From contig NW_026925603.1 in the NCBI RefSeq assembly GCF_032062105.1, positions 124,001 through 188,000 on the forward strand: a stretch of DNA of 64,000 bases, in the 5' to 3' direction. Below are positions 129 through 59,319 of this stretch, piece by piece (position 1 is the first letter of the stretch; every line of letters begins with the position of its first letter). The notes under the pieces are model-generated. The model searched no databases. It was not told the origin of the DNA and saw only the letters and a program-made list of their open reading frames with translations. This DNA comes from Saccostrea cucullata (Eukaryota). The position numbers and the translations under genes were made by a program.

Positions 129-241
129 TTTACAGAGCTAACTGTCAGTTTCTGGTCTGTTTTTTATTTACAGAGCTAACTGTCAGTTTCCTGTCCGTTT
201 TTCATTTACAGAGCTAACTGTCAGTTTCCAGTCCGTTTTTC
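129..241 (+). repeat. 38-bp tandem repeat (3 copies) spanning a TRAPPC11 splice acceptor
   Basis: tttacag|agctaactgtcagtttc recurs with AG ending at 135, 173 and 211; the third copy starts the coding exon. Confidence 0.9.
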
Positions 242-3200
242 CAAACTCTCGGTTCAGCTGAACAACCAGATTTACAATGACTACTGTAAGGTGGTGGACG
301 GACACGGAATATCGGCCGTGTCAGACGGAGACTTCACAGACAAGGACCTGTACCTCGTACCCAAGAAAACCAAGCTCTACACATTCTCCTTCCTACCGGT
401 CAAAGATGACATCAATTCACAAATTGAGGTAACTTTGCTAATGACATTTTCAATTTTCAAAGTGATCAATGCTGAAATACTGTACAATGTGAATGTGTTA
501 TCAGTTCTGATGTGTTGCCAAGCAATTACTATGCTTAGTGCCAGTAATATAAATCTAATGAAGCTTAACATGTTTTTTAGCTCACCTCAACGAAGTTGGG
601 GGGAGCTTATGTGATACCCTTGGCGTCGGCATCGGCGTCCCAGGTTAAGGTTAAGTTTTTTGGAGCAGTTTTCTTTTTAAGTACTTCTATGTCCTATATT
701 GACTAGACATGCATGGAAGATGTTTCTAATGTGTTTCATTGTACCAGTCAAAGTTTCAGATGCTGCAATTTCAGCAAAGGAATGACCAGGTTAATGTTTT
801 TGGTGCAGGTTAACATTTTTGGTGCAGTTTTTGGTGTAGGTCTCATTTCCAAGTAACTATAAGCCCTATGTTGACCAAAATTACATGGATGGTACATCTA
901 AGGATACATACTACCAGACTTGCTTCGGATGCTGAATCTGACCTACATTTTCCAGTTGAGTGAACAGGTTAAAGTTTTTGGTGCAGATTTCATTTCAAAG
1001 ATACTATGAGCCCTATAATGACCAAACTTTCATGGATGGTACATCTTAGGATGCATTCTACTAGACTTGCTTCGGATGCTGAATCTGACCTACATTTTCC
1101 GGTTGAGTGAACAGGTTAAAGTTTTTGGTGCAAGTTTCATTTCCAAGTTTCTATGAGACATATAATGACCAAACTTGCATAGATGGTACATCTTAGGATG
1201 CATACTCCCAGTCTTGCTTCGGATGCTGAATCTGACCTACATTTTCCGGTTGAGTGAACAGGTTAAAGTTTTTGGTGCAGGTTTCATTTCCAAGTTACTA
1301 TGAGACATATAATGACCAAACTTGCATAGATTGTACATCTTAGGATGCATACTCCCAGTCTTGCTTCGGATGCTGAATCTGACCTACATTTTCTGGTTGA
1401 GTGAACAGGTTAAAATTTTTGGTGCAGGTTTCATTTCCAAGATATTATGAACCCTATAATGACTAAACTTGCCTGGATGGTACATCTTAGGATGCATACT
1501 ACCAGACTTGCTTCGGATGCTGAATCCGACCTACATTTTCTGACGAGTAAACAGGTTAAAGTTTATGGTGCAGGATTCATTTCTAAGTAACTTTGAGCCC
1601 TATAATGACCAAACTTGCATGGATGGCACATCTAAGGGTGCATTTTACTAGGCTGGCTTCAGAAGCTGAATCTGACCTACATTTTCCAGATTAGTGAAAA
1701 GGTTAGTTTTTATACAGGTTTCATTTCCAAGTAACTTTGAGCTCTATGTTGAACAAACTTGCATGGATGATACATCTTAGGATGCACATTAATGGACTTG
1801 CTTCAGATGCTGAATTCGACATACATTTTCCAGATAATAGACCTCGTAAAAGTTATGGGTGCAGGTCTATCACCAAGAAACTATAAGGCTTATATAAACC
1901 AAAGTTGCACAAATGATGCATCAAGGGATGAAAACTCTCAATCTTGCTTCAGATGCTGGATTTTAATTACATTTTCATGATGAAGAACTAGTTTTAAGTT
2001 TTTATATAGGTCTGTTCCAAAGTATCAAAATTGCATAAATTTTGCATTTTTGGATGTACACTTTTTGTTGGTTAATTGTGTGACTTAATTTGCCTTACTT
2101 AAAGACAAAATTCATTGAGGTGAGCTCTGTAATCTCTGATTACCTATGTTTATTTCGAGAATTAATATTATGAACACAATTAATCTACATTTTTCTGTGT
2201 ATTATCACTAGTACCCTGTGTGTGTATCTGTAGGTGACCTCTATGGTCCTGGAGCTGGGGTCAGAGTCAGGGAGGTGTGCCTTACTGAGGTGGATGGGAG
2301 GGGGAGGGGATGCTCTGGTCTCGCCGTACGCCTCCCCCCCAGTGATAAACAAACCCCACACCAAGCCAGAGGACATCCACTGGGAGTGTGTGGGAGTCCG
2401 ACCTAAAACCAGGTATGTCTCACTAATGAATGGTACTGATTCAGGATAAATAATACAGGGGAATAAAAAAGGGTAGGGAGACACTGAAGGAAATGAGGTT
2501 GTTTTAACTCATTAATATATTTATAATGAAGTCTTCCCAAGGAGACTTTGTGGTCTTACCTCGGCCTTTGTTTATTTCTTCCCTGAGTTGTTTCTCAGAT
2601 ACCTTTATAACTATAGTCTTACGAAGGCAGCTTAAATCTGTTCTAACACGACCCTTTGTTAATTTTGACCTTGTTTTAAACAGAGTCTTACCAAGGACAG
2701 CTAAGGTTGACCTTGACCTAAATCATCAGCCACCGTGTCTCCTGAATGAATTCTACTCACTGTCACTGGACGTAAACAATGCAGAGGATGTGGACATCAA
2801 CAATGTCAGGTCAGTAGTATAAATACAGTAAAACTCGGTTATAACGAAGTCACTGGGACCTATGAAATAACTTCGCTATACCCATAGTTCTTTATATTCA
2901 TATAAGAAATTCATTAAATTTGTCAAGACAGTTGTACATGTAGATTTACTGTTGATATTATACAAATGTAGATGTACATGTACTATGACATCTAGGGTAG
3001 GGAAGATGATTTTTTTAACATCTACAAGTATATACAAATTGCATTAGATTTAAACTTTGAATTTACATTTTTTTTAATCTACCTATTTATTGCATGATTT
3101 AATGTAGATTGTCCTTTGGTATCAAAGAAGATTCCTCTACAACGGTTACAGACCAAACAAGTAAGATAGAGGCAAATTAGTCATGTGCTTATGAACATTA

Positions 3201-58500: not shown

Positions 58501-59319
58501 AAGGACAAAATGAAAGATTGAAACTAAGAAGTTTCTTTTCTGTGTGGATCTAGTCTCAATATATCCTTCATTCAATTTGGTGGAGAGGCATTATCCACTG
58601 TCTTACCTATGTAAGCCTGATATCTATGTGGTGCTAGTCTCAGAGCTTCCTTCATGTGTCGGGTGGTACCTTACCTGTGTAAGCCTTGTATCTATGTGGT
58701 GCCAGTCTCAGGGCTTCCTTTGTGTGTGTGTGGGGGGGGGGGGACCTTACCTGTGTAAGCCTCGTATCTATGTGGTGCTAGTCTCAGAGCTTCCTTCATG
58801 TGTGGGGTGGCATCATCCACTTTCTTCAGTTCCAATAAAGCTGTACCTTTCAGCAGGAAGGCCTCAATGTTGTACGGATCTAGTGTGTTTGCCTGGAAGA
58901 GTAACAATACAACTGACAAATGAAACTGTAGCTCTACTTATTTTTGAAATGATATAGTACCCTTCAACAATAACTCGATCTTTAAATTTTTTTTTAAATT
59001 AAGAATGTGTTTTTAAAAGAAATAATTACAATAAAATAATTATAGAAAATGTCTTTATAACTTTCATTTTCCTTGAAAAGTTTTAATGAAAATTTACAAT
59101 TTGTAGAAAATTGATAAATAGATTTTATATCAACAATGATGTAGAATTTGAGTATGATTCACTATTATTTCAAAGATTCATTATACAGAAACTAAGTATC
59201 CAACCTTTTGTGCAAAGTAGATTGTTTTGGAGACTTTTCTAGTTGCTAAGCAATAGTAACCAAGGGAGATCCAGGGCTCTGCTGCCTGCTCTGTGATCTT
59301 CAGTAACTGCTGGGACAAT
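55520..59319 (-). CDS. ANAPC7: Anaphase-promoting complex subunit 7, 3' portion (8 exons; 5' exons outside the window)
   Basis: Phase-consistent exons 59319-59205, 58892-58751, 58364-58264, 58100-58056, 57738-57626, 56962-56846, 56493-56373, 55576-55520 (TGA). TPR repeats AEPWISLGYY, EAFLLKGTALLEL, EALRLAPHRYEAYTGLIQCY, AKPYLEKAMKLDP, EALDQFSIALSLDP and an acidic tail EGSDVESAWSDTEFS. Confidence 0.92.
56160..56385 (-). repeat. 30-bp tandem array (~8 copies) of ANAPC7 exon tail plus donor
   Basis: Sense unit cagtgatgaagag|gtaggtcaaaggtcata; the coding donor is at 56372-56371. Confidence 0.92.
56475..56830 (-). repeat. 36-bp tandem array (~10 copies) of ANAPC7 acceptor plus exon head
   Basis: Sense unit tttctatttttag|cttggacccgtctaatgt...; AGs at about 56495 (coding), 56531, 56567, 56603 and 56652. 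Confidence 0.92.
57322..57536. mobile_element. MITE with TA TSD
   Basis: Perfect TIR ccgtaaatctggaaattttt / aaaaatttccagatttacgg flanked by TA. Confidence 0.8.
58540..58823 (-). repeat. ~70-bp tandem repeat (3-4 copies) of ANAPC7 exon tail plus donor
   Basis: Plus-strand cttacct(g/a)tgtaagcct..tatctatgtggtgc.agtctcag at ~58746 (coding), ~58670 and ~58603, with a remnant at ~58543. Confidence 0.9.

Follow-up and report, generated by a model that had tools for sequence, protein, structure and literature searches.

Tandem arrays anchored at splice junctions form a common repeat class in the oyster Saccostrea cucullata and in some other bivalves

A stretch of 64,000 nucleotides from the oyster Saccostrea cucullata (RefSeq assembly GCF_032062105.1, contig NW_026925603.1, here C7740:124001-188000), referred to as the window, contains all or part of the multi-exon genes TRAPPC11, TCHP, ASPDH and ANAPC7. 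The assembly of 1.17 Gb includes both haplotypes, and zero N occur in the window. Analysis with Tandem Repeats Finder identified eight clear tandem arrays that straddle exon-intron junctions of these four genes, together with one decayed two-copy repeat. In every case the unit consists of the gene's own exon end and the adjoining intron, and the copies extend into the intron. Two of the clear arrays lie at acceptors (38 and 36 bp) and six at donors (55, 35, 71, 43, 30 and 70-76 bp). Such junction arrays are a real, common and enriched repeat class in this oyster and in some other bivalves. The analysis covered 260 kb of S. cucullata at the level of single letters, and species were compared at TRAPPC11 alone. 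Genes, arrays and related repeats are given below in window coordinates.

212-9367, plus strand: TRAPPC11 coding exons 16-28 (RefSeq XP_062607500.1); the gene starts ~16 kb upstream of the window
11434-17304, plus strand: TCHP, 14 coding exons, 498 aa; orthologues have 498 aa with Pfam TPH
19829-27453, minus strand: ASPDH, 8 coding exons, 267 aa; the Crassostrea virginica neighbour has 267 aa with Asp_DH_C
55450-59319, minus strand: last 8 coding exons of ANAPC7, with TPR repeats; among natural proteins in the PDB, APC7 residues 427-462 match best
129-241, plus strand: 38-bp acceptor array, 3 copies, TRAPPC11 intron 15; 8 nt of intron and 30 nt of exon, exon start 212
5122-7862, plus strand: 55-bp donor array, ~37 copies, TRAPPC11 intron 23; 34 nt of exon and 21 nt of intron, donor 5156
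13769-15063, plus strand: 35-bp donor array, 37 copies, TCHP intron 7; 14 nt of exon and 21 nt of intron, donor 13783
16235-16511, plus strand: ~117-bp two-copy duplication filling TCHP intron 12; just 3 exon bases, a marginal member
19996-20273, minus strand: ~71-bp donor array, 4 copies, ASPDH intron 7; 46 nt of exon, exon edge 20228, old, with 77% matches
22241-23311, minus strand: 43-bp donor array, ~25 copies including 28-bp deletion variants, ASPDH intron 2; 40 nt of exon and 3 nt of intron, exon edge 23272
56161-56385, minus strand: 30-bp donor array, 7.5 copies, last intron of ANAPC7; exon edge 56373
56476-56816, minus strand: 36-bp acceptor array, 9 copies, ANAPC7; exon edge 56493
57560-57641, minus strand: decayed 42-bp donor repeat, 2 copies, ANAPC7; exon edge and donor 57626
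58602-58810, minus strand: ~70-76-bp donor array, 3 copies, ANAPC7; exon edge 58751
2617-2720 (approximate), plus strand: one decayed copy echoing the acceptor of TRAPPC11 intron 17, at an offset of ~67 nt; z 6.1
20537-20650, minus strand: decayed copy echoing the donor of ASPDH intron 6, at an offset of 76 nt
826-1833, plus strand: 147-bp satellite in TRAPPC11 intron 16; taken as transposon-borne, not junction-anchored and left out of the tests

Exon edges of TRAPPC11 were placed by spliced alignment with the RefSeq protein, which gave 27 GT-AG introns. TCHP and ASPDH boundaries follow open frames equal in length to their orthologues, and most ANAPC7 boundaries were shown by RNA joints, with the APC7 match in addition. 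Gene models were searched one exon at a time, and the second haplotype of TCHP and ASPDH (contig C8829) and of ANAPC7 (contig C9200) was followed through match coordinates. The original prediction, made by reading the window, had listed nine clear and two tentative arrays. Eight of the clear ones were confirmed and a tentative ~43-bp repeat proved real (57560-57641); the ~115-bp array is the marginal TCHP duplication, and a junction repeat of ~120 bp was looked for in the window genes and not found. Across the four genes 16 of 108 junctions, about one in seven, carry an echo. Searches with the array-containing regions returned matches to the units on the allelic contig alone. The ANAPC7 42-bp repeat has an older echo 357 nt away, past a transposon at 57318-57540. 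That insertion, which splits the old array, and 12336-12425 are short high-copy elements, probably resembling miniature inverted-repeat transposable elements. Directly past the TRAPPC11 stop, the 3' untranslated region holds a two-copy duplication of 43 bp (9379-9466, plus strand).

Placement of the arrays was compared with the expectation from uniform placement, after arrays had been collapsed and transposon satellites removed. Within the four window genes 10 of the 15 arrays not belonging to transposable elements were junction-anchored, where 2.4 were expected (P 9e-6). The original prediction placed every long array outside transposable elements at a junction; a few short non-junction repeats occur in the same introns as well (55596-55683, 24377-24460 and 26499-26820). 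As the choice of window biases this test, TRAPPC11 orthologues were used as an unbiased sample. Junction-anchored arrays numbered 11 of 29 in Ostrea edulis (3.0 expected, P 7e-5), 6 of 10 in Saccostrea echinata (1.3 expected) and 9 of 14 in the scallop Argopecten (1.6 expected, P 2e-6), so that the predicted enrichment over intron interiors and the presence of arrays beyond one assembly are both supported. The overall excess is 4-6 fold. Units are mostly unrelated between species and sit at different junctions, which, over several loci and species, supports the view that the process is recurrent. Few or no junction arrays were seen in TRAPPC11 of Mytilus (1 of 4), Pinctada (2 of 4) and Mactra (0 of 4), and no arrays outside transposable elements were found in that of C. 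virginica. In three oyster species and a scallop, 20-39% of the intron sequence at the sampled loci consists of junction arrays. Repeated use of the same junctions by different lineages is only suggestive (P 0.02, or P 0.13 with the oysters merged).

A genome-wide count of the donor heptamer AGGTAAG, present three times at gaps of 20-50 nt, gave 3356 matches against 343, 520 and 764 for control words of the same composition, a 4-10 fold excess at similar single-word frequencies. The first 100 triplet matches listed covered 18 contigs within the first 1751 for AGGTAAG and 18 within the first 6969 for a control. Some 250 loci were estimated for AGGTAAG alone and the word marks ~7% of donors; therefore, as a rough inference, a thousand or more donor arrays would be present in the genome. 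The corresponding acceptor count (5274 vs 1351) was set aside because a dispersed 21-bp satellite confounds it. These numbers bear on the suggestion that arrays form more easily in GC-richer, exon-derived DNA, or that the window is a chance cluster. Junction units do have a higher GC content than introns (0.39 vs 0.33) and the window test is ascertained, but interior units lie at background GC (0.323 vs 0.326), and the same excess appears in the unbiased orthologues and in the genome-wide count with composition-matched controls. This explanation is largely refuted and we regard it as very improbable. An origin as assembly artefacts or as transposon-derived satellites is hardly credible. Assemblies may mis-size long, nearly identical arrays and satellites of 146-166 bp are common here, recurring along the contig, but every unit derives from an exon end of the gene in which it lies, and arrays with diagnostic variants are found again in other species whose assemblies are independent. 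In addition, the head-to-tail joint of a 74-bp ANAPC7 array is present in three raw reads from another animal.

That 74-bp array was found on the second haplotype. At donor 57626, contig C9200 carries ~17 copies of the unit (corresponding to window positions 57618-57692), compared with the decayed 42-bp pair in the window. Similar differences were observed elsewhere. In TRAPPC11 intron 3, a 47-bp donor array of 77 copies (C7740 ~109234-112860) faces 0 copies and an intron of 232 nt on the second haplotype, and the 37 copies in TCHP intron 7 face ~4 on C8829. The TRAPPC11 intron 15 array is missing from the second haplotype; the intron 23 array, which is interrupted by two insertions, is common to the second haplotype and S. 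echinata, and the ASPDH intron 2 array is present on both haplotypes. The two S. echinata haplotypes differ as well, with 11 vs 6 and 54 vs 38 copies. Four arrays are common to S. cucullata and S. echinata at the same junctions with identical breakpoints, and the breakpoints of the TRAPPC11 intron 3 array are the same in both S. echinata copies. Arrays can therefore outlast a species split. Copies in the shared arrays often retain states since lost from the exon. A continuing role of the exon copy as master was not supported, as copies at TRAPPC11 introns 7, 11 and 23 ignore exon substitutions; unlike these, the Ostrea intron 7 copies match their own exon, so that copies may track the exon over long times. 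Faster divergence of exons beneath arrays was rejected (P 0.3-0.4). Between the two haplotypes exons are 95% and introns 70-80% identical (95% and ~75-80% for TRAPPC11 on C7740 and C18937), and identity drops within ~10 nt of both exon edges. The predicted rise of divergence with distance from the exon was recovered in direction, with rho below 0 in 26 of 30 arrays, but it is weak (median -0.2) and chiefly reflects decay of the last copy. The distal copy is often decayed, and the consensus of the internal copies is common to both haplotypes.

Three further allelic differences were recorded. At TRAPPC11 exon 3 the C7740 copy equals that of S. echinata and the other copy carries states found in C. 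virginica, a sequence pattern for which trans-species polymorphism, introgression or a hybrid animal are possible explanations. One S. echinata copy (L023 34918-35133) has a 103-bp duplication that reaches 199 nt into the exon past TRAPPC11 intron 26, and the annotated protein of that copy is short, with 1099 aa. On the second haplotype ASPDH intron 6 contains ~4.6 kb of additional sequence (C8829 9478-14109), probably an insertion; a junction array was ruled out here.

The share of junction-anchored arrays climbs with copy number, from 7 of 32 below 3.5 copies (22%) to 13 of 24 at 3.5-10 copies (54%) and 22 of 29 at 10 copies or more (76%; P 3e-5). Among fresh two-copy duplications 1 of 8 was junction-anchored, in a small and underpowered sample. 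A mutational process targeted to junctions, as originally proposed, may act at array birth. Given the climb and the low share among fresh duplicates, however, the bias seems to arise mainly while arrays expand or persist. Arrays that do not straddle a junction also cluster near donors. Ten of 43 start 0-30 nt inside the intron, against 2.2 expected (P 4e-5); position therefore matters, not a complete splice signal. Donor matches per TRAPPC11 junction increase with exon length (rho 0.56, P 0.003; one gene, post hoc). The clustering near the edge and the effect of exon length are both confined to the donor side, and events across lineages number 29 at donors and 15 at acceptors (P 0.05). Unit sizes range from 28 to 133 bp across the sample, each unit deriving from its own exon, and microhomology at the roughly placed unit boundaries is mostly 0-4 nt, on which ground slippage between long pre-existing direct repeats was rejected. 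Arrayed donors are not weaker than others (8.9 vs 8.0 bits), and their G-skew, purine content, CpG and hairpin energy are no higher than at other donors; G-skew, CpG, hairpins and weak sites thus find no support as predictors of arrays.

RNA reads were used to determine which copies are spliced, a check that the original prediction had called for. Three poly(A) runs labelled as the same species were analyzed for ANAPC7 only. As the reads are mostly 90-99% alike, the RNA comes from other animals, possibly with different arrays. At donor 56373 of the 30-bp array and at donor 57626 only the exon-proximal site was detected, with 54 reads each. At the 36-bp acceptor array, 34 reads joined the exon-proximal acceptor near 56493 and 2 reads the next copy at 56531, 36 nt off. 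No RNA depth was seen over the 30-bp array. That the acceptor chosen is the last of the nine agrees with exon definition. Use of the exon-proximal donor matches human F7, where the upstream donor wins (PMC1557585).

The reads also bear on a selected function, in which reiterated U1/U2AF sites would help to define the exon, prevent premature polyadenylation or adjust isoforms. It could draw on the arrays that outlast the split of S. cucullata and S. echinata, on the two ANAPC7 arrays that are in frame (30 and 36 bp), on the 2 reads at the second acceptor copy and on human F7, in which pseudo-sites work once the authentic site is gone (PMC1557585). The data nevertheless do not support retention of the arrays for their U1/U2AF sites. 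Arrays are missing from the corresponding introns of the other haplotype (77 vs 0 copies) or of other species (none in C. virginica), the proximal site is used, the 30-bp array shows no RNA depth, and arrayed donors are not weaker than others. Exon-free arrays are enriched near donors as well (10 vs 2.2), and the period modulo 3 is uniform (11, 12 and 13), so that frame-preserving selection was rejected. Such a function is improbable.

The original prediction was made without awareness of a description of these arrays as a dense, systematic repeat class, but the repeat type is already known. Tandem repeats across exon-intron boundaries, with units of 10-160 bp at both boundaries, were named 'mirages' in amphioxus, where haplotypes differ in length, splicing is normal and the mechanism is called unclear (PMC3087553). 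They occur in Adh3 and the globins BflGb6/9 (Canestro et al. 2002, as cited in PMC3087553) and also in TnC and PGBD5 (PMC3902484); somatic length instability is among the features reported for the Adh3 mirage. The oyster arrays resemble them in units that span the boundary and the splice signal (the eight clear arrays and the 42-bp repeat, and marginally the 117-bp TCHP duplication), in their position at donor or acceptor, in locus-specific units of minisatellite size, in copy-number polymorphism between haplotypes and, for ANAPC7 and with reads from other animals, in normal splicing at the authentic site. In amphioxus, edge copies escape homogenisation; concerted evolution that leaves out the edge copies may also occur in the oyster arrays, in which the distal copy is often decayed and internal copies share a consensus across haplotypes. 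Unlike amphioxus mirages, described from a handful of genes and with no enrichment test, the bivalve arrays reach 155 copies (Argopecten), show a measured excess, fill much of the sampled introns and are spread patchily across bivalves. Human splice-donor variable number tandem repeats in F7 IVS7 (IVS, intervening sequence), IFI6 (6-16), CBS IVS13, LMNB2 and PDGF are similar in that they vary in length, begin with a unit lying across the end of the exon, continue with pseudo-donors and are spliced chiefly at the site farthest upstream, although IFI6 and CBS also make use of the two pseudo-sites that come next; unlike the oyster arrays they are isolated cases, described there on the donor side only (PMC1557585). 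The Rogers model of intron gain (discussed in PMC3087553) likewise invokes tandem duplication including splice signals, here of proto-splice sites, but no new intron arises in the oysters. The same 27 TRAPPC11 introns are present in every fully aligned oyster copy, and the arrays only lengthen existing introns. Transposon-borne oyster satellites form tandem arrays of ~146-166 bp inside introns; they differ from the junction arrays in having one unit family at many loci, in not deriving from a host exon and in not being junction-anchored. No bivalve or genome-wide description of the class and no measurement of its enrichment was found in a literature search that left most subscription journals outside. 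What is new is the scale, the patchy spread in bivalves, the copy-number and near-donor patterns and the lack of frame bias.

With slightly better than even confidence we favour the explanation that the arrays are neutral, locus-specific minisatellites ('mirages') with a life cycle biased to exon edges, and not a splicing device. Each array starts from an ordinary tandem duplication of 30-100 bp, mostly with the 0-4 nt of microhomology observed. By established logic, duplications lying wholly inside exons are purged, and those spanning a splice site are tolerated because the site beside the intact exon is chosen and the extra copies fall in the intron, as the ANAPC7 reads illustrate. Given this choice of the proximal site, the apparent growth into the intron needs no directional mechanism. 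Duplications that touch the exon or start within ~30 nt of the donor are far likelier to lengthen than interior ones, as the pattern described above shows. The conserved exon may act as an anchor, as the sole stretch where divergent alleles match, and so initiate conversion or unequal exchange that reaches into the neighbouring copies; it may also protect the array, at one of its ends, against the deletions by which oyster introns turn over. The arrays would then grow, shrink and decay independently of the exon, outlive a species split and often be lost from one haplotype, and their commonness would be set by the general tendency of a lineage to form minisatellites.

Several observations weigh against this neutral life cycle. 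A pure homology or shielding model predicts symmetry of donors and acceptors, and the data show the donor excess of 29:15 and the donor-only near-edge cluster and exon-length effect. TRAPPC11 is almost devoid of such arrays in C. virginica and Mytilus, which are polymorphic bivalves too. Even low-copy arrays are ~2-fold enriched at junctions, the eight young duplicates are too few to exclude a birth bias, and the cross-species data stem from one gene. The same donor asymmetries would be accounted for by a mutational process coupled to transcription or splicing, in which polymerase pausing, R-loops or nicks at the exon end and 5' splice site of germline-expressed genes drive both the initial duplication and later expansions. 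Long locus-specific arrays in housekeeping genes, with none in the intergenic half of the window, and the scarcity of microhomology, as staggered-nick repair would give, agree with it. Arrayed donors, however, do not exceed other donors in G-skew, purine content, CpG or hairpin energy, no enrichment was detectable among fresh two-copy duplications and acceptor arrays are also common (15 events), so that this explanation is possible but doubtful. RNA-templated repair, another route in the original prediction, is without support because the units hold exon-intron and not exon-exon joins. Ostrea, Saccostrea and scallops might share a genome-wide, transcription-directional mutational process at the 3' ends of exons, linked either to recognition of the 5' splice site or to recombination that exons initiate, and nearly off in Crassostrea and Mytilus, which would have built at least about a thousand arrays and much of the intron length of housekeeping genes. 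This is unlikely, but if true, no earlier system would have allowed the origin of mirages to be mapped, together with a connection of splicing architecture to germline mutation.

The origin of mirages has been called unclear in the literature and has been studied gene by gene, while hundreds to thousands of loci are estimated here. Differences between haplotypes, and near absence from the same gene in close relatives, make the origin testable. A direct test is possible between exons as anchors of repeat expansion and splicing or transcription as forces shaping germline mutation. The arrays also amount to a natural experiment on a large scale, in which identical sites compete to be chosen as splice sites. 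In practical terms, they are a possible source of error in gene prediction and in read mapping, and they offer gene-linked length markers for oyster breeding.

Further genes and repeats were identified around the arrays. An intronless gene for a 673-aa Mab-21/cGAS-like receptor lies antisense within an ANAPC7 intron (61849-63870, plus strand; Pfam Mab-21 and Mab-21_C over the cut-off), and a 508-aa MFS transporter gene without introns is located at 41398-42924 (plus strand; Pfam MFS_1). ASPDH intron 1 contains an open reading frame of 356 aa (25444-26514, plus strand) with zero Pfam matches, which we take to resemble the C-terminal part of a retrotransposon protein of the type lacking long terminal repeats. 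Outside the window, contig C7740 carries three arrays of one 26-bp unit, each of 32-40 copies and with partly shared flanks (~81494-82306, 91764-92666 and 103668-104696), which are probably carried by a mobile element.

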